A stretch of 64,000 nt of DNA from Rebecca billardiae RCC1528. Lineage: Eukaryota > Protista > Haptophyta. Below, piece after piece: positions 7,218-30,778 of the stretch (its first letter is position 1; the number at the start of each line of letters is the position of its first letter). A program made the position numbers and the translations under genes. The notes beneath the pieces were generated by a model that saw only the letters and a list, made by a program, of their open reading frames with translations, was not told where the DNA came from and made no database searches. The stretch covers positions 1,426,001-1,490,000 of the forward strand of contig OZ251238.1 in assembly GCA_965240325.2 (NCBI GenBank). Direction: 5' to 3'.

Positions 7218-7483
7218 CGCTGTGGGGCGTGGCGGCGCGCGCTGCTGCAGCTGGCGTGCTGCTGCAGAGCCGCCACGCTCTTACGCTGCGCGGCCGCGCG
7301 CTGGCCATTCGCGCGTGCGACTGATGAGGCTCAGCAGCGGCAGCTTAGCGGCAGCTACAGTAGCGTCGTTGGTCATCATGCCTCATCACTCATGGACATG
7401 GTGCAGTACTCTGAGTACTATACTGACTACACTGATGCGTATGTCGTGTGTACATACGACGATCCATGACGATGATCAGCTCG

Positions 7484-7596
<113 letters not shown>

Positions 7597-7769
7597 ATGA
7601 CCGTGCTCCAGGATCCGTGTGAGTGCCTTAGTGATAGTCCGATGGTGCTGAGTCGCCAGACAGCCTGCGAAAGTCGTCTTGCGAGCATGCAGGGACTCAG
7701 CGCCGTAGTCCGCCTGAAGGCGGGCAGCACGCTGCACGGCGCCGCGGGGATCAGCGCATCGCGTCGTCA

Positions 7770-20861: not shown

Positions 20862-23723
20862 TCAGTTGACGGCGACCATGGCGGCGTGCGGCATCATCTG
20901 CGCCGGGGCGTGCGCCTTGCGCGAGCGCTTCGCCAGCTGCGCCACCTCGCCGCGCGAGCCCCACGCGCTCCCGCGCCTGTACTGCGCGTACTCCCGCCGG
21001 TACCGGTTCAGCTTCTCCTCGTCGACCGCCTTGACAAACGGCTCGGGCGGCGGCAGCACCACCTCGGGCACTGGCACCTCCGGCAGCGGCGGCGTGGGCG
21101 CGCGCTCGGCGTCGGGGTCGGCGCGGCTCGGCGCGGCCGTGACGACAACCGTCGGCACCGCCGCGGTCGGCCGCGCCGCCGCGAGCTGCGGCGCGGGCGC
21201 GCACTGCACGCAGCCCTCGGACACGTCGCGCCGCGCCGCGTTCGCCTGCAGCGCGGCGTGCAGCTCGTCGACGCTCGTGTCGAAGAAGTAGGTGCCGTTC
21301 TCCGCGTCAGTGGCCATGCCGCCGATCGCGGCGCAGAGGCCCATCGCCGGGTTCTTGAGCGTGTGCTTGTCGAAGCGCATCTGGCGCACGAGCTTGTCCG
21401 CGTCCATCGAGCGCGGCACGAACGTGGGCAGCCCGGTCGCGCCGATCAGCTCGTAGTGCTCGTCCACGACCGCCTGCGTGCAGATGCCCTTGCGCAGCGC
21501 GATCTCGGCGGAGACGCACATGCCGATGGCGACGGCCTCGCCGTGGAGCAGCGGGCGGTGCAGCGGGCCGCTCCACGAGAGGTGCTCGACCGCGTGCCCG
21601 ATCGCGTGGCCGTACTGCGGGCACACCTCGTTGTAGTCCGTCTTCTCGTACGCGTCGAGCGTCGGCGCCTTGATCTCGAGCGCCGCCTTGCAGATGCGCT
21701 CGAGGTACTCGCCGTCCGTGAGCGGCTTGCCCGCGCGCAGCGGGTCGACGATCATGTCGGTGAGCTCGCGCGACTGCGTGAGCCCGTGCTTGAGCGCCTC
21801 CGAGATGCCGTTGAGGATGTGCCGCTCGCTGAGCGTCGAGAGCGCGTCCGGGTCGATCGCGATCGTGCTCGCCGGGTAGTAGCAGCCGAGCAGGTTCTTG
21901 CCGAGCGGGTGGTTGACCGCCTGCTTGAAGTCGAGCGCCGCGTCGAAGGTGGACATGGTGGTGGTGGGCAGGTGCACGAGCGAGATGCCGCGGTACAGCA
22001 TGCCCGCGAGCACGCCCGCCAGGTTGTTCACCACGCCGCCGCCGAGCGAGACGATCGCCGAGTTCTTGTTGATGCCGTTGCACAGGATCTCGTCCGCGCA
22101 CGCGCTCAGCACGGCCATCGTCTTGTGGTGCTCGGTCGAGGGCTCGCCCGCGGCGTCGGCGAGGTCGGAGGGCATCGCGGTCTTGTGCACCTCGAGCCCG
22201 GCGGCGCGGAGCCCGGCGACCACCTGCTCGCCGTAGATCCCGTCCACCACCGTGTCCGTCACCACGTGGATCGGCGCGCCGTGGCACTTCTCGGGCAGGA
22301 AGTGCTTCGCGTGCGCCGCGAGCGCGTCGAGCTGGAGCAGCCCGCGCCGGATGATCACCTCGGTGTGCAGCGGCTTGCCGTCGCGGCCAAAGGTGTTGCG
22401 GTAGAAGCCGCGCTCGTCGACCTCGCCCGCCTTGAGCAGCGGCTGCCCCGCCGGCGCCACGTTCACGTTGAGCGCCGGCTTCGCGTCGAAGTCGAACCAC
22501 GGCACGCGCGCGAGCCGCGCGCCGGAGGCGTTACCCGAGTTACCCGCGTCCAGGGCGTCGAGCCGCGCGAGCTGCTCCGGACTCAGCTGCCAGTCGAGGA
22601 CGGCGAGGACGGGCGAGGCGAGGTGCGGGAGGACGACCGCCGTGCCGCGCTGCACGCCCCAGCGGAGCAGCACCTGCGCCGCCGTCTTGCCCGTCTGCGC
22701 GCCGATCTCCCGCGCAATCTCCGCCATCTTGTCCGAGTGAAAATCGGTCGCGCCAGCGCCGAACTGCGCAGCGCGGCCGAGCGCACAGGCGCGAGCGCGC
22801 GCGCGCGCGCGCGCGAGCGGTGGCAGGGCGGACGGTCGGTGAGACGGGGCGGCGGGCGCGGCGAGGCGGGTGGATACGCGGGCTCCCGCCGCACTGCCGC
22901 TGCGCGCACGCACCTGCGCCGTCGGGAGGTGCGCCACGAGCTGGACGTCAAAGCCGCGGCAGTCGGCCAGCAGCTGGCGCTGCGGCAGCAGCGGGTGGGC
23001 CTCGACGTGGAGCGAGCGCGGCTTGAGGGTGCAGTCGGCGAGGAGCTCGGTGAGCATGCGCGCGTCGAGGTTGCACACGCCCAGCGCGCGCACGAGCCCC
23101 GCCTGCACCAGCTGCTCCATCGCGCCGTACGTCTCGGCGATGCCCGCGCGCGCGCCGCTGTGCACGAGCGCAAAGCTTGTGGCGTCGGAGCCGGGCGTCA
23201 TGCGCGCGGGCCTGCGCGCGGACGAGGAGCGGGCGGCGTGGCGGGCGTGGGGGAGCGGGTGAGCGGGGTGTGGCTGCGCGCGGGGCGGCGCGGCATGCGG
23301 CTGGGCGCTCGTGCGCGCACGCCCGCGCGCAGACTTGGCCCAACCGCGCGCGCGGCTGCGGCGCCGGCGGTTACGGGGCGCGGCGCGCGCGCGCGCGCAC
23401 CAGTGCATGGCGTACTCGTCGAGGTACTCGAGGCCGAGGTTGGCGAGCGTGCGACGGCAGGCCTTCTCCACGTCCTCGGGCGCGGCGTCGGCGCACCACA
23501 ACTTGGCCACGACGTAGAGCTCCTCGCGCGTCACGTCGCCCGCGTCGATCGCGTCGCGGATGGCCACGCCAACCTCCTGCTCGCGGCCGTGGATCTGGGC
23601 GACGTCGATGAGGCGGACGCCGGCTCGGATGGCGTCGCGGATCGTCTTGTTCACGTTGGTCGTGCCGTCCATCGCGTCGGAGAGGCCGACGAGCGGCATG
23701 GGGCGGTACGTGTTCGAAAGCAT
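20862..23723 (-). CDS. Fusion of aldo-keto reductase and 2-deoxy-scyllo-inosose-synthase-like sugar-phosphate cyclase; exons 23723-23401, 23211-22914, 22763-20862 (about 840 aa)
   Basis: AKR part: RLIDVAQIHG, VVAKLW, YLDEYAMHWP (completed by splicing), GVCN, EAHP, AQVLLRWGVQRG. Cyclase part: SLGGGVVNNLAG, YRGISLVHLPTT, DFKQAVN, GKNLLGCYYP, SEALKH, QYGHAIGHAVE, HGEAVAIG. In-frame GT-AG introns 23212-23400 and 22764-22913. Confidence 0.85.
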   Translation of the reverse strand: MLSNTYRPMPLVGLSDAMDGTTNVNKTIRDAIRAGVRLIDVAQIHGREQEVGVAIRDAIDAGDVTREELYVVAKLWCADAAPEDVEKACRRTLANLGLEYLDEYAMHWCARARAAPRNRRRRSRARGWAKSARGRARTSAQPHAAPPRAQPHPAHPLPHARHAARSSSARRPARMTPGSDATSFALVHSGARAGIAETYGAMEQLVQAGLVRALGVCNLDARMLTELLADCTLKPRSLHVEAHPLLPQRQLLADCRGFDVQLVAHLPTAQVRARSGSAAGARVSTRLAAPAAPSHRPSALPPLARARARARACALGRAAQFGAGATDFHSDKMAEIAREIGAQTGKTAAQVLLRWGVQRGTAVVLPHLASPVLAVLDWQLSPEQLARLDALDAGNSGNASGARLARVPWFDFDAKPALNVNVAPAGQPLLKAGEVDERGFYRNTFGRDGKPLHTEVIIRRGLLQLDALAAHAKHFLPEKCHGAPIHVVTDTVVDGIYGEQVVAGLRAAGLEVHKTAMPSDLADAAGEPSTEHHKTMAVLSACADEILCNGINKNSAIVSLGGGVVNNLAGVLAGMLYRGISLVHLPTTTMSTFDAALDFKQAVNHPLGKNLLGCYYPASTIAIDPDALSTLSERHILNGISEALKHGLTQSRELTDMIVDPLRAGKPLTDGEYLERICKAALEIKAPTLDAYEKTDYNEVCPQYGHAIGHAVEHLSWSGPLHRPLLHGEAVAIGMCVSAEIALRKGICTQAVVDEHYELIGATGLPTFVPRSMDADKLVRQMRFDKHTLKNPAMGLCAAIGGMATDAENGTYFFDTSVDELHAALQANAARRDVSEGCVQCAPAPQLAAARPTAAVPTVVVTAAPSRADPDAERAPTPPLPEVPVPEVVLPPPEPFVKAVDEEKLNRYRREYAQYRRGSAWGSRGEVAQLAKRSRKAHAPAQMMPHAAMVAVN

Positions 23724-24237
23724 CTCGGGCGTGTCGGCGGTAGGTCGGTCAACGCCTGGCGTTGCGCGGAGGTTGGTGTTGAAGTTTGGATCCGCCGGTG
23801 AATCGGCGGTTACGACCGGACTTGAATGTTCTGGGGTTGCGGGAAAGTTGATGACGAGCCGATAAGAATCGGCTAAAGCAGCCGGTATTGCCAGTATTCG
23901 GATGGTACTTGTGTCGCAATCCCGCGGAGTGATTCTTCGAATCTGAGCACAATACATAGCGCGTCCGCCGCTGCCCTCGTCCCTCGTCGACAGCGCCTGC
24001 CTTGTTGTCAGCCAATGACCATGCATCGCGGGGTAAGCCGGGGTAAATAGCCTCCAGCGTCCGCCGCCGCTGAAGCTTCCGAATCTCCTCCAGCCGCATC
24101 GGGTCTGATCCCGGCGGGTAAGCAACCGACCGTTCGTTGATGGTGAGACCAAAAAAGTAGGAGCTCTCAACCGGCCAAACCGACCAGCAGCCAACTCCGA
24201 GCACTCACCCGGCGCACGCATCAACGCACGCATCAGC
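23724..24237. promoter_or_regulatory. Probable bidirectional promoter of the AKR-cyclase and WrbA-ABM-ThuA pair
   Basis: 514-bp lower-GC spacer between divergent ATGs. GAATC/GATTC at 23800, 23866, 23931, 23939 and 24081; GAAnnTTC at 23824 and 24072. Confidence 0.55.
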
Positions 24238-26081
24238 ATGGGCCGCATCCTCGTCTTCTACCACTCGAACACGGACTGCACGTCGCAGATGGGCAAGCTC
24301 GTCGCCGCCGGCGCCGCGCAGATCCCCGGCCACGAGATCCGCCTCCGCTCCACCGAGGACTGCACGCACGCGGACGTGCTGTGGGCGGACGGCCTCGCGG
24401 TCGGCACGCCGACCAACCTCGGCGGCATCGCGTGGCGCATGAAGAAGTGGTGGGACGAGTTCGCCGCGGACAACTGGAACAAGTGCGACGGCAAGCTCTG
24501 CACCGTCTTCTCCTCGCAGGGCGGGCACGGCGGCGGCGCCGAGATGTCCTGCCTCGCCATGTCGACCGTGCTGATGAACTTTGGCTTCCTCAGCTTCGGC
24601 GTGACCGACTACGTCGACAAGATCCACACGCTGCACTACGGCGCGGTGGTGGCGAAGCAGCCGCGGAACGAGCACGACCGGCTCGCGTGCGAGCGCCTCG
24701 GCCTGCGCCTCGCCGAGTGGGTCGCCGTCTACGTCGACGGGCGCAAGACGCTCCACCCGCTGCTCACGACCAAGGCTGACGACGCCGCAACCGCCGAGAA
24801 GGCCAAGGCGGAGGACGCGGCGAGCGCGCCGGCGGGCGCGGCGCGCGCGGTGCACGTGGTCGTGACGAAGGAGGTGCCTGAGGCCAACCAGGCCGAGTGG
24901 CTCGGCATGGCCGAGAAGCTCGCGCACCACACGTGGCGCGAGCCGGGCGTGCTCAAGTACAACTTTGTCAAGTCGGCCGACTCGCCGACGCGCTTCGTGA
25001 TCACGGAGGAGTGGGCGTCGATGGCGCACCTCGAGGCGCACTTCGCCACCCCGCACTTTACCACGTACGTGCCCAAGATGGACGCCATCTCCGAGACCGT
25101 CTCGATCGACAAGTGCGTCGACGCGCTCGCGCGCCGCCCCGCGGGCAGCGCGCTGGTCGAGTCGCTCGCGGTCGGCGCCGAGCGCAAGCGCACCGCCCTC
25201 GTCTTCAACAAGGTGCGTGGCGCGCGCGCGCGCGCGCGCGGTGTGTGTGCGCGCGCTCGACCCGAACCGCCGCGCACCCGGCGCGCAACGCCGCGCTCAC
25301 GCTGCGCGCCCGCCGCCGCACCCCGGCACGCGTCCGCGCGCTCGCACGCCCGCAGGCGACTGCCTACCGGCACGACTCGATCGACGCCGCGACCGAGTGC
25401 ATGTGCCGGCTGCTGGCCGAGCGCGGCTGGGCGTCGGTGGTGTCGGACGACTCGTCGCTGCTCGAGAAGGGCACGGCGCGGCCGTTCGACGCGATCGTCT
25501 TCGTGAACAACTCGGGCGACATCTTCGACCCGGCCAACGAGGCACTGAGCGAGCACCTAGCCGCGGGCCGCGGCGTGCTCGGCGTGCACGCGGCGCTCGC
25601 GTGCTTCCTTACGGGCGAGTGCGCGGCCGGGCACACGCTGATGGGCACGAAGACGGACGTGATCCGCGAGCTGTACGGCGCGCACTTCCGCAACCACCCG
25701 CCGCCGCAGCAGGCGACGCTACACGTGCACCACGACGCCGCGGCCGAGCTCTCGCCCGCGTTTGCGGAGCTGCCGCCCTCCTTCAGCCACCACGACGAGT
25801 TCTTCAACTTCGACGTCGACCCGAGCGCGGGCGCGGACGACGTGCGCGTGCTCGTCTCGGTCGACGAGAAGACGTACGAGGGCGGGCTGCACGGCGAGCG
25901 CCACCCGCTCGTGTGGAGCCGCGCGCTGGGCGAGAGGCGCGCGCCCGTCTTCTACTCGGCGCTCGGCCACTTTGCGCACGACTACGACGCGTCCGTCGCG
26001 GACACGAGCCGCGTGCAGGCGGTGCTGCGCGCCGGCCTGGACTACGTCATCACGCAGTCGGCGCCCGTCGCGCCGGCATAG
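24238..26081 (+). CDS. Triple fusion of WrbA-type flavodoxin/NAD(P)H oxidoreductase, ABM (dimeric alpha-beta barrel) domain and ThuA-like domain; exons 24238-25212 and 25356-26081 (about 566 aa)
   Basis: WrbA part: ILVFYHSNTDCT, ADGLAVGTPTNLG, FSSQGGHGGGAE. ABM part: EPGVLKY, FVITEEWAS, HLEAHFATPHF. Intron 25213-25355 restores LVFNK-ATAYRHDSI; ThuA motifs GVHAA, FRNHP, DEFF, HPLVW and FYSALGH follow. Confidence 0.88.
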
Positions 26082-27507: not shown

Positions 27508-28539
27508 TCATCCAGGCGATGTCGGCTCGCTCATCGCCACCGGCGGCAGCTCGGTCAGCTGCGTGCGCGGCCTGACCGCGCCGGCACAGCAGCAGCAGCC
27601 CTCGCGGCAGCGGCGGAGCAGCCGCGACGTGCAGCAGCCGGCCGCGCCGCCCCCGTCGGCCGCGCCCCCCGCGCGCGCCGCCGCGAAGCGCTCCGCGATC
27701 TCCTCGAGAGAGTGGCCCTTCGTCTCGGGGATGTAGCACGCGACGAACGCGCCCGCGGCCAGCGCGACCGGTACGAACGCCAGCCACGCGCCCGCGGGCG
27801 AGAGCGCGAGCTGCATCGTCAGGAACGAGGCGGAGATCACGCCGGCGACGATGCGCGTGATGAAGAGCGCGAGTGACATGCCGACCGCTCGCACGCGCGA
27901 CGGAAAGAGCTCGGCGCAGACGACGTACACGAGCGGCGAGAAGCCGAGCGAGAACGAGGCCATGTACGCGCACAGCCCGACGATCGCGAGCGCGGGCGCG
28001 CCGCCGCTCGCGGCTGCCGCCGCGAGGACGAGCAGCGAGCAGCACAGCCCGGCCGCGCTCAGCAGCAGCATCGGCTTCCGGCCGACGCGGTCAAACAGGC
28101 TTGCGCCGATGCCGAGGAAGAGAAGCTTGCACGCGCCGACGCCGGTGATCGCGAGCAGCGTGTCCCTGCGCGAGCGCACGCCCGCCAGCCGCACGATGTG
28201 CCCCGCGTAGTACACCAGCGCCTCCGAGCCCACCGCCTGCGAGAAGAACGCCAGGCCGAGCCCCCGCCACACGAGCGCGCGCGTCACGCCGTCGCGCGCG
28301 CAGAGCGCGTCGGCGATTGACGAGCCGGCGGCGGCGGGGCCGGTGGTTTCGGGGTCGTCGGCGGCGGGCTTGCTCGGCGCCGCGCCCGCCCCGCCGACGC
28401 CGCCGACGCCGCTGTCCCCACCGCCGCCGCTGTCCCCACCGCCGCCGCTGTCCCCACCGCCGCCGCTGTCCCCACCGCCGCCGCTGTCCCCACCGCCGCC
28501 GCTGTCCCCACCGCCACCGCTGTCTCCACCGCCGCCGCC

Positions 28540-28577
<38 letters not shown>

Positions 28578-29268
28578 CGCTGCCGCCGCCGCCGGCAGCG
28601 CTTGCGCTCACAATGTCCCTCAGCTGCTGCTCCGCCGTCTCGGGCGTTGGCGAGATGTCGAGCAGCACCTGGCGCGCGCGCTCGATCTTGCCGCGGTGGA
28701 CGAGCCAGCGCGGGCTCTCGGGCAGCAGCGGGAGCAGCAGCAGCAGCGCCACCGGCGGCAGCACGCCGACGGCAAACATCCATCGCCAGCCGCTCGGCGC
28801 CGCATAGAACGCGAGCCCTGACGCATACCCGAGCAGGATGCCCCCGTTGGTCGCGACGTCGCCGAGCGCGACGAGCGCGCCGCGGTGCTCGGCGGGCACG
28901 AGCTCGGCGGTGAGCACGGGCGCGACCACCAGCGCGAAGCCCACGCCCACGCCCTGCAGCAGCCGTCCGAGGAAGAGCACGAGGAAGCCGGGCGCGACCG
29001 CGATCGCCGCCGAGCCGACGAGGAACGTCACGTTGGCGAGCGCGATGCCGACGCGGCGTCCGAAGGCATGCGCGACCCAGCCGGCGGCGACGCCGCCGAA
29101 CGCGGCGGCGATGTTCATCACGCCCACGGCGAGCTCGTGCTGCACGTCGCTCAGCCTCAGCTCGTCGCGCATGGTGAGCGCGGCGGACGCAATCACTCCC
29201 TGGTCGTACCCCGAGAGCACGGAGCTCGCGGTGGAGACGGCGATGGCGAGCACGAGCGCACGCTTCAT
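27508..29268 (-). CDS. MFS sugar-porter family transporter (polyol/inositol type)
   Basis: LSGYDQGVI, FGRR, GRLLQGVGVG, AEL..P...RG, WRWM, PESPRWL, DRVGRKPML, AELFPSRVRA and PETKG.SLEEI. Confidence 0.95.
28411..28592 (-). repeat. 18-bp coding minisatellite (GGGGDS about x7) plus poly-Gly in the transporter central loop
   Basis: GCTGTCCCCACCGCCGCC units every 18 bp from 28411 on the + strand. Confidence 0.95.
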
Positions 29269-29758: not shown

Positions 29759-30778
29759 ATGGCAACTCCTTCGTGGTACGCGCACCTCCTCAACAAGCCG
29801 AGGGGCGAGGCGAAGCCGCAGCCGAGTGAGCCGCAGCGCATCCTCGTGAGCGGGACCACCGGCTGGATTGCGAGCGGCGTCGCCAAGGAGCTCGTCGCCG
29901 CCGGCCACTCTGTCACCGGCATCGCGCGCCGCAAGACGGAGATCCCGGGCGTGAAGTCGCTGCAGGCGGACCTGCTCTCGGCGGAGTCGCTCAAGATCAT
30001 CGGTGAGCACGGGCCGTTCGACGTGTTCATCCACCTCGCCGGCTCGCTCGGCTGGTGCTCCCTCGAGCAGGGCGTGGACATCAACGTCGCGGGCACGCGC
30101 AAGATTGTGCAGGCGGCGCTGGACGCAGGCTGCAAGCGCGTGATCGTCGCGAGCACCGTCGCGATCATCGGCACGACGGCGCCGCGCTTCCCGCCGAAGC
30201 GGCTGCCGCTGCGCGTAGACGACCCATTTGTCGGCTCCGCCTGGCCGTACGCCCTCTCCAAGTACATGGTCGAGGAGCAGGTGGCGTTCATGTCGCAGTC
30301 GGACGCGTGTGAGGACGTAGACTTCATCGTCGTGCGCGTCGGCGCGACCGTGACCGACCCCCCGGAGATCGTGCACAAGGACGGCGTGGTGAACGGGAAG
30401 GAGGTGTCGTGGCCAGTCGAGCCCGCGCGCTGCACGGACAAGCCGTACGACGCGGCGAGCGAGAAGGTCTTCGTCGAGGACGCCCTGTGCGCGGTCGCGT
30501 ACTCGGACCAGGTGGACTGCCTCGTGCACTGCGCCGTCCGCTGCCCCGTGCAGGCGGGCGTGCGCCAGATCGCGTGCGTCGCGCCGCGGCTGTACAACAT
30601 CGACCCGGTGCCCGCCCTCTTCGAGTCGTGGTACGGCGCCGAGGTCGCCAAGGGCATCGACACATCGTTCTACGACGACCCGGCCAACCTGCATGCGCCG
30701 ATCTACGACCTCGGCCCGGGCAGGGCGCTCGGCTGGGAGCCAAAGGTCGACCTGCTCGCGTGCAAGCTGGCGAAGTGA
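29759..30778 (+). CDS. NAD(P)-dependent epimerase/dehydratase (extended SDR)
   Basis: ILVSGTTGWIA Rossmann motif, FIHLAG, INVAGT, VIVASTVA, YALSK catalytic motif and LGWEPK. Intronless. Confidence 0.92.
   Translation: MATPSWYAHLLNKPRGEAKPQPSEPQRILVSGTTGWIASGVAKELVAAGHSVTGIARRKTEIPGVKSLQADLLSAESLKIIGEHGPFDVFIHLAGSLGWCSLEQGVDINVAGTRKIVQAALDAGCKRVIVASTVAIIGTTAPRFPPKRLPLRVDDPFVGSAWPYALSKYMVEEQVAFMSQSDACEDVDFIVVRVGATVTDPPEIVHKDGVVNGKEVSWPVEPARCTDKPYDAASEKVFVEDALCAVAYSDQVDCLVHCAVRCPVQAGVRQIACVAPRLYNIDPVPALFESWYGAEVAKGIDTSFYDDPANLHAPIYDLGPGRALGWEPKVDLLACKLAK

Follow-up and report, generated by a model that had tools for sequence, protein, structure and literature searches.

Does a gene of the haptophyte alga Rebecca billardiae RCC1528 encode a eukaryotic synthase of 2-deoxy-scyllo-inosose (DOIS), and if it does not, what does it encode? 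The gene occupies positions 20862..23723 of the minus strand in a 64,000-nucleotide stretch of contig OZ251238.1 (positions 1,426,001 to 1,490,000; hereafter the window). An earlier note on this DNA had read the sugar-phosphate cyclase (SPC) encoded there as having DOIS rather than 3-dehydroquinate synthase (DHQS) signatures and had proposed its horizontal acquisition from a bacterial aminoglycoside-type cluster. Our analysis indicates that the enzyme belongs to an unstudied cyclase clade next to DOIS, that it is fused to a reductase and that its product is probably a deoxy-cyclitol.

The predicted fusion protein is 840 aa long, and Pfam recognised in it an aldo/keto reductase (AKR) domain followed by two DHQS-family domains. 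The AKR domain (PF00248, 106.4 bits against a cut-off of 24, 1.9e-30) covers residues 1 to ~300, or positions 22485..23723 of the minus strand with the introns inside this span. The SPC domain (residues 326-720; 21225..22409, minus strand) matched DHQ_synthase (PF01761; 94.8 bits, cut-off 24.2, 3.3e-27) and DHQS_C (PF24621; 77.4 bits, cut-off 27.6, 1.4e-21). An AlphaFold2 model of the cyclase domain (pLDDT 94.9, pTM 0.92) had the two-domain DHQS fold and was aligned by Foldseek with 6lk2, 2gru and 3zok at TM 0.76-0.78; DHQS and DOIS structures were matched equally and were not separated by fold. By its Pfam matches, motifs and fold, the cyclase domain is a member of the SPC superfamily with a DHQS-like fold.

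Hundreds of relatives of the cyclase domain (46-75% identity) were found in protists: in Pavlovales, Prymnesium parvum (three paralogues), diatoms, ochromonads, Chrysophaeum and Rhodomonas, and also in Porphyridium (two paralogues, one automatically named DOIS), Salpingoeca, Monosiga and Stygamoeba. Prokaryotic relatives came next at ~35-47% identity, many of them ~625-aa fusions with an N-terminal nucleotidyltransferase. Tree references were annotated genes drawn from a plasmid collection: DOIS genes of Sodalis and Burkholderia in aminoglycoside-like clusters (neighbours: DegT aminotransferase, PIG-L deacetylase, glycosyltransferases and radical-SAM/SPASM genes), a third DOIS-named gene from Streptomyces, two sedoheptulose-7-phosphate (SH7P) cyclases, three aroB genes beside aroK or shikimate dehydrogenase, and one DHQS-family gene. 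The same topology was obtained in a quick tree of 144 rows and a careful tree of 87 rows (LG+C20 PMSF; support given as ultrafast bootstrap / SH-aLRT). The eukaryotic cyclases were monophyletic (100/97) and nested within a large prokaryotic clade, which we call clade X; its members come from bacteria, an Asgard archaeal metagenome-assembled genome (MAG; Thorarchaeota) and many protist lineages. Clade X plus the eukaryotes received support of 100/99 on a branch of 0.50, and the DOIS clade 99/88. DOIS, clade X and the eukaryotes were united at 100/99, with aroB types and SH7P cyclases outside. In these trees, a check of the kind that the earlier note had proposed, the cyclase thus nests neither in DHQS nor among the SH7P cyclases, and the nesting that the note had named as refuting its view was not seen; the enzyme falls outside both DHQS and the DOIS clade.

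Active-site residues were compared among 34 DHQS-type, 7 DOIS-clade, 36 eukaryotic and 60 prokaryotic clade-X sequences and 43 further fusions. BtrC numbering was counted along the printed alignment (Asn of GGGLTGN = 108, Lys of IKQAVN = 141, Glu of EYGH = 243). The four motifs quoted in the earlier note are all present on the minus strand of 20862-22763, at mapped window coordinates. They are GGGVVNNLAG (22014..22043), the Gly-rich NAD motif, with Asn at the position of BtrC Asn108 and the DHQS Asp; KQAVN, within DFKQAVN (21912..21932), in which Lys corresponds to BtrC Lys141 and Gln to Gln142; GCYYP (21873-21887); and QYGHAIGHAVE, within NEVCPQYGHAIGHAVE (21585..21632), with Glu at the DHQS Arg264 position and Gln at the position of BtrC Glu243 and DHQS Asn268, followed by the metal-ligand His and a second His. 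The BtrC motifs given for comparison in that note were also correct, the alignment reading GGGLTGNVAGV, IKQAVN, GFYYP and EYGHTIGHAIE, as were the DHQS motifs in the 34 DHQS-type sequences (GD 34/34, K-T/V, F-x-Q, N-x-GHT 34/34).

GGG of the NAD motif, the catalytic Lys at BtrC 141 and the three metal ligands (the Glu of SEALKHG, the His of YGH and the His of HGEA) were invariant in all groups. The BtrC Asn108 column held Asp in 34/34 DHQS-type sequences and Asn in the DOIS clade, clade X and the eukaryotes; directly after the catalytic Lys, DHQS-type sequences had Thr or Val and the other three groups Gln. Four residues before the N/E/Q position, Arg was found in all 34 DHQS-type sequences, Gly or Ala in the DOIS clade and Glu in clade X and the eukaryotes (35 of the 36 eukaryotic sequences). 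We take this Arg to be Arg264, the binder of the carboxylate of DAHP (the 7-phosphate of 3-deoxy-D-arabino-heptulosonate), and the DHQS residues Asp146, Arg264 and Asn268 are in A. nidulans numbering. At the BtrC Glu243 column DHQS-type sequences had Asn (34/34), the DOIS clade Glu (7/7) and the SH7P cyclases Asp (n=2), while Gln occupied it in 35/36 eukaryotic, 52/60 prokaryotic clade-X and 43/43 further fusion sequences. The Gln to which the earlier note had drawn attention is therefore present, but it is clade-wide and no local oddity. Before the catalytic Lys stood Gly-Gly in DHQS-type sequences, Ser-x in the DOIS clade and Asp-Phe, a pair specific to clade X, in clade X and the eukaryotes; after E-x-x-K the corresponding residues were Tyr or His, Asn, and His. 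These residues suggest a pocket that, like the one in DOIS, is made for a substrate lacking the carboxylate of DAHP, yet with a clade-wide signature of its own.

The strongest functional clue is the recurrent pairing of the cyclase with a ketoreductase of two unrelated folds, an AKR in eukaryotes and a short-chain dehydrogenase/reductase (SDR) in prokaryotes. An AKR is fused N-terminally to the cyclase in ~40 eukaryotic public protein clusters, Nitzschia inconspicua included, and also in Pavlovales CCMP2436. Salpingoeca rosetta has the AKR as a gene of its own, 1.3 kb from the cyclase gene and in head-to-head orientation to it; the AKR carries the unusual C-terminal R-F-V-R-x-P-W-(W/F)-x-F motif of the fusions. 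In prokaryotes, a 240-250-aa SDR gene was found directly 3' of the cyclase gene in 4/4 contexts examined, one of them a Thorarchaeota MAG, and Parcubacteria-type proteins hold a nucleotidyltransferase, the cyclase and an SDR in one chain. This pairing would mean that the ketone of the cyclase product is reduced, and therefore that the product is a cyclitol; in aminoglycoside pathways the ketone is transaminated. The set of 2-deoxy-scyllo-inosose (DOI) aminotransferase, radical-SAM dehydrogenase, glycosyltransferase and deacetylase that surrounds the Sodalis and Burkholderia DOIS genes was absent from the window and from the surroundings of the clade-X genes examined.

The prokaryotic clade-X modules (SPC-SDR operons and NTP-transferase-SPC(-SDR) fusions) share with the algal gene the SPC clade, the Gln signature and the constant pairing with a ketoreductase. 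They differ in that the reductase is an SDR, not an AKR, and in their genomic setting, and they are uncharacterised. Their clusters contain kinases (APH-like and GHMP), nucleotidyltransferases, CDP-alcohol phosphotransferase, glycerophosphotransferases and glycosyltransferases. The clusters are glycan or teichoic-acid-like, and their content suggests that they supply surface polymers with a nucleotide-activated cyclitol. No such partners accompany the eukaryotic genes, which fits a free cyclitol.

From the observed domain make-up, clade membership, active-site residues and reductase coupling, we propose as the probable reading a cytosolic two-domain enzyme in which the clade-X cyclase would make a deoxy-inosose from a hexose 6-phosphate and the AKR would reduce it to a deoxy-cyclitol. 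We infer the substrate, the product and the order of steps by analogy with DOIS and DHQS. The cyclase domain, dependent on NAD+ and a metal, would oxidise the hexose 6-phosphate, for which glucose 6-phosphate (G6P) is the likeliest candidate; phosphate elimination, reduction and ring opening would follow, and the carbocycle would be closed by an aldol reaction to give the deoxy-inosose. In DHQS the phosphate is thought to act unaided in its own elimination, and Glu243 of DOIS has reportedly been proposed as the base for this step (Nango et al. 2008, a paper cited in PMC13707489). Since the clade has Gln at that position, elimination would probably proceed without the DOIS base, and the amide found there resembles the DHQS arrangement. 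The AKR domain, which is aldose-reductase-like, would then use NADPH to reduce the ketone on the ring, giving a quercitol-type cyclitol (a deoxy-inositol). For a near homologue, the closest solved relatives are aldehyde and aldose reductases (AKR1A/1B/4), enzymes that form polyols.

Several points weigh against this proposal. Clade X is without an assayed enzyme, so that substrate and product rest on analogy, and splicing and the fused transcript are predicted from homology. The profile of the clade scored DHQS structures at up to 285.8 bits, above BtrC at 248.2 bits. In an approximately unbiased (AU) test (42 rows, iqtree2, LG+F+G4), a tree uniting clade X and the eukaryotes with DHQS against DOIS plus SH7P cyclases was not rejected (p = 0.166; the third constraint tree was searched with -fast). 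Clade X is thus best placed beside DOIS, with some doubt, and its sister relation to DOIS is not secure on these alignments. The AKR catalytic tetrad Asp-Tyr-Lys-His is incomplete: Asp40, Lys75 and His107 are kept and His45 (codon 23589..23591, minus strand, within IDVAQIHGRE) stands in the place of Tyr. Among 27 other AKR-cyclase fusions 25 keep the Tyr, and the fusions at 70-73% identity are among these 25. Pavlovales sp. CCMP2436 also has His (LDFAPVHENQ; L016, ~7259-7612), and the change is specific to pavlovophytes (this alga and CCMP2436). Because the catalytic Tyr is His, reduction by the AKR may be weak or altered in this species. Finally, the cyclase differs from DOIS in Gln for Glu243, Asp-Phe before the Lys, His after E-x-x-K and Glu at the Arg264 position, which might reflect a different hexose phosphate or a different epimer.

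The last point leads to the alternative that survives best, an enzyme with the same chemistry and a different substrate, which we regard as unlikely but keep in view. These clade-specific departures from DOIS are found near the catalytic Lys and the metal site, and EboD provides a precedent for a new SPC substrate (PMC12904256). However, nothing points to any particular alternative, among cytosolic hexose phosphates G6P is the abundant one, and several substrate-side positions are as in DOIS.

We consider it very unlikely that the gene is a true DOIS orthologue, taken by the alga from a bacterial 2-deoxystreptamine cluster and put to new use. The likeness to DOIS is real. In a sequence search of exon 3 against solved structures the top match, well beyond chance, was BtrC DOIS (2d2x; 139.8 bits, 1.2e-39), and among plasmids the DOIS-annotated genes were the best tblastn matches. 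The cyclase has in common with BtrC the fold, the NAD motif, the metal ligands, Asn108, Lys141-Gln142, Tyr-Tyr-Pro and the absence of the DHQS carboxylate-binding Arg, and the DOIS clade is its sister in the best tree. However, plant DHQS trailed BtrC by just 2 bits in the structure search, whereas the Sodalis and Burkholderia DOIS genes matched BtrC 70-90 bits above any DHQS, and the AU test rejected an exclusive clade of eukaryotes and DOIS without clade X (p = 0.0009). Glu243 is replaced by Gln throughout the clade. DOIS pairs with a DOI aminotransferase and 2-deoxystreptamine genes, while the cyclase here is eukaryotic, intron-bearing, AKR-fused and coupled to a ketoreductase, and its nearest prokaryotic relatives have no DOI aminotransferase neighbours. 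The claim of DOIS rather than DHQS signatures therefore stands for the Asn in place of the GD Asp, the K-Q pair, YYP and the missing Arg; it fails for membership of the DOIS clade, and the profile preference for DHQS structures also tells against it.

The proposed capture from an aminoglycoside-type cluster does not fit. The nearest prokaryotic genes have an SDR beside them and belong to glycan or teichoic-acid-like clusters instead of 2-deoxystreptamine clusters. The eukaryotic genes are a monophyletic family that spans several supergroups (Amoebozoa, choanoflagellates, red algae, stramenopiles and haptophytes). Within the eukaryotes Stygamoeba branched first, then choanoflagellates and red algae, and finally a red-plastid algal clade to which the AKR fusions belong. 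Five metagenomic sequences without a taxonomic label formed the prokaryotic sister group (85/86). The matches listed in a scan of genome contigs, generic aroB ones among them, did not include the close prokaryotic relatives, and only one Myxococcales MAG stood out (37% identity). This branching order, with all the eukaryotic genes nested as a single clade in prokaryotic clade X, points to an ancient acquisition, after which the gene was inherited vertically or spread between eukaryotes, and not to a recent capture from an antibiotic producer.

A divergent DHQS of the organism's own shikimate pathway is highly improbable, in spite of the database name '3-dehydroquinate synthase' of its homologues, a fold and an overall reaction type in common with AroB and the AROM domain, equal fold matches to DHQS and DOIS, and a profile similarity to DHQS at least as great as that to BtrC. 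Three DAHP-specific residues that are invariant in 34/34 DHQS-type sequences, Asp146, Arg264 and Asn268, are all replaced here, by Asn, Glu and Gln, respectively. Against the aroB equivalog model (NCBIfam TIGR01357) the protein scored 197.6 bits and its homologues 224-273 bits, below the cut-off of 305; neither this protein nor its homologues nor real DOIS genes came up to the threshold of any NCBIfam model. Furthermore, the AU test rejected a clade of eukaryotes and DHQS (p = 0.0001), the gene has no shikimate-pathway context, and an aldose-reductase-like fusion partner has no role in that pathway. We give almost no credence to an SH7P cyclase (EEVS, EVS or DDGS) for gadusol or mycosporine-type sunscreens: eukaryotic SH7P cyclases are known (PMC4426668, PMC7826186), but ValA (EEVS, 95 bits) and DDGS (64 bits) scored far below BtrC with exon 3, the two SH7P references split off across a 100/100 branch, and a methyltransferase-oxidase or ATP-grasp partner is absent.

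A reductase-fused clade-X cyclase that makes a deoxy-cyclitol would bear on the osmolytes of marine protists. For haptophytes, diatoms and thraustochytrids, the literature records deoxy-cyclitols in this role (PMC7998644; Fujii 1995 and Garza-Sanchez 2009, both cited in PMC5334607; Kobayashi 2007, cited in PMC7686483; Jakobsen 2007, cited in PMC5794333). The solutes reported are cyclohexanetetrol in Isochrysis and diatoms, cyclitols as compatible solutes in Pavlova, and proto-quercitol in thraustochytrids. How they are made has yet to be described; according to a 2026 paper the origin of 'deoxyinositol' is unknown, and a route from myo-inositol is no more than a guess there (PMC13490583). A 2026 review of cyclitol synthases covers DHQS, aminoDHQS, DOIS, EEVS, EVS, DDGS and the new DEIS (EboD), and contains no eukaryotic DOIS-like enzyme (PMC12904256). 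In full-text literature searches we found no paper about the prokaryotic clade, nor any that connects deoxy-scyllo-inosose or the clade-X family with protists.

We tentatively suggest that the AKR-cyclase fusion is a myo-inositol-independent entry enzyme to the deoxy-cyclitol solutes of marine protists, that its prokaryotic relatives make nucleotide-activated cyclitols and that together they form a new functional class of SPC. The candidate solutes would be 1,4/2,5-cyclohexanetetrol (in pavlovophytes, Isochrysis and diatoms) and, elsewhere, quercitols or 'deoxyinositol'; to reach a tetrol, the deoxy-inosose made from hexose 6-phosphate would later be dehydrated and reduced. If this is true, the route to the deoxy-cyclitols that these algae use against salt stress is one that nobody has described, and the AKR-cyclase gene is a concrete, clonable candidate with a simple assay. 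In prokaryotes, the clade-X cyclase-SDR module suggests an undescribed pathway to nucleotide-activated cyclitols. SPCs are known from the shikimate pathway and from the making of aminoglycosides, C7-cyclitols and sunscreens, with EboD as a recent addition; clade X is a further large clade with its own active-site signature.

Two further known systems are close to the proposed role. EboD (DEIS) is also an SPC found in algae; it turns a hexose 6-phosphate into a deoxy-inosose and is not part of an aminoglycoside pathway (PMC12904256). It differs in being encoded by plastids or bacteria in a six-gene ebo operon, and in the published tree of Yurchenko et al. it falls with the SH7P-using part (PMC5133447); no ebo-type neighbours were found in the window. 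The EEVS and methyltransferase-oxidase (MT-Ox) pair of vertebrates and green algae, which makes gadusol, is likewise a eukaryotic SPC with an adjacent or fused tailoring enzyme (PMC4426668, PMC7826186), but it belongs to another SPC clade, uses a heptulose substrate and has a methyltransferase-oxidase as its partner.

The gene model, which is homology-guided, has three exons on the minus strand, with the start ATG at 23723-23721 and the stop at 20864-20862. Exon 1 (23401..23723) encodes the N-terminal part of the AKR and terminates in ...AMHW with a split codon (TG|G). Intron 1 (23212..23400, 189 nt, GT..AG) is in frame and stop-free; once it is removed at CACTG|GTGCGC...CGCAG|G, the AKR HWP motif is complete again and runs on into the conserved ..VHSG..IAETY.AME segment. 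Exon 2 (22914..23211) encodes the middle part of the AKR. Intron 2 (22764..22913, 150 nt, GTGCGT..CAG) is also in frame and stop-free, at a site where homologues have no insert. Exon 3 (20862..22763) encodes the C-terminal part of the AKR, the linker, the SPC domain, the C-terminal tail and the stop. The introns were located by comparison with homologues, which reveal the points at which the AKR sequence is broken here. Both introns are stop-free multiples of three, and ORF finders therefore see a single 1128-aa frame at 20862-24248 of the minus strand, which spans the introns and 525 nt upstream of the likely start. The span 20862-22763 given in the earlier note is a real coding stretch, but only the last exon: 22763 is the acceptor of the second intron, and the first two exons encode AKR. 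The 840-aa model is backed by colinear full-length AKR-SPC fusions of 762-843 aa at 70-73% identity. The exon order is the same in Pavlovales sp. CCMP2436, where a single gene has been annotated as two, one for the AKR and the other for a truncated cyclase. Contamination was ruled out by the spliceosomal-type introns and by the G+C of the gene, which matches that of the window (~70%).

The C-terminal tail (~120 aa, 20865..21224, minus strand) is Pro/Ala-rich and gave no Pfam match. At its end is a conserved-looking motif, PPxEFV...L..R..Y..YR.G.A.G..GEV.QL (20934-21038, minus strand), which recurs at the N-terminus of a Chrysophaeum taylorii homologue (P0067, residues ~10-60), directly before its cyclase domain.

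Three further genes lie near the fusion gene. A plus-strand gene at 24238-26081 is head-to-head with it across a shared upstream region of 514 bp. It encodes an ABM domain (1.2e-15) together with a weak flavodoxin/WrbA-like part, and past a likely intron a ThuA domain (3.9e-34) follows in a second frame. A sugar/polyol-type transporter of the major facilitator superfamily (MFS) is encoded at 27508-29268 on the minus strand (Sugar_tr, 2e-84), with a long Gly-rich stretch, (GGGGDS)n, inserted into it. Next to it, at 29759-30778 on the plus strand, is a gene without introns for an SDR of the NAD-dependent epimerase/dehydratase type. The transporter and this SDR could serve a cyclitol pathway. A conserved cluster with the cyclase was considered and rejected: the flavodoxin-ABM-ThuA, MFS and SDR genes were not found within ~8-10 kb of the cyclase in seven other loci.

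Some members of the wider family have unusual architectures. In a few fusions (P0121, P0132) the AKR sites are fully degenerate. Prokaryotic clade X also includes GHMP-kinase-cyclase fusions and occurs in Parcubacteria/Patescibacteria (L001, L097, L098, L099; P0303, P0305, P0308, P0309, P0140). A 935-aa protein from a JGI metagenome (P0268) has two DHQ_synthase N-terminal and three DHQS_C matches and is apparently a tandem duplicated cyclase in one chain. Finally, the ENA metagenome contig_14110 (L101 / L102) carries a tandem array of at least 4 identical cyclase genes in units of ~3.5 kb; each unit has a 115-aa antisense ORF with no Pfam match, and the array adjoins a 2334-aa reverse-transcriptase gene.

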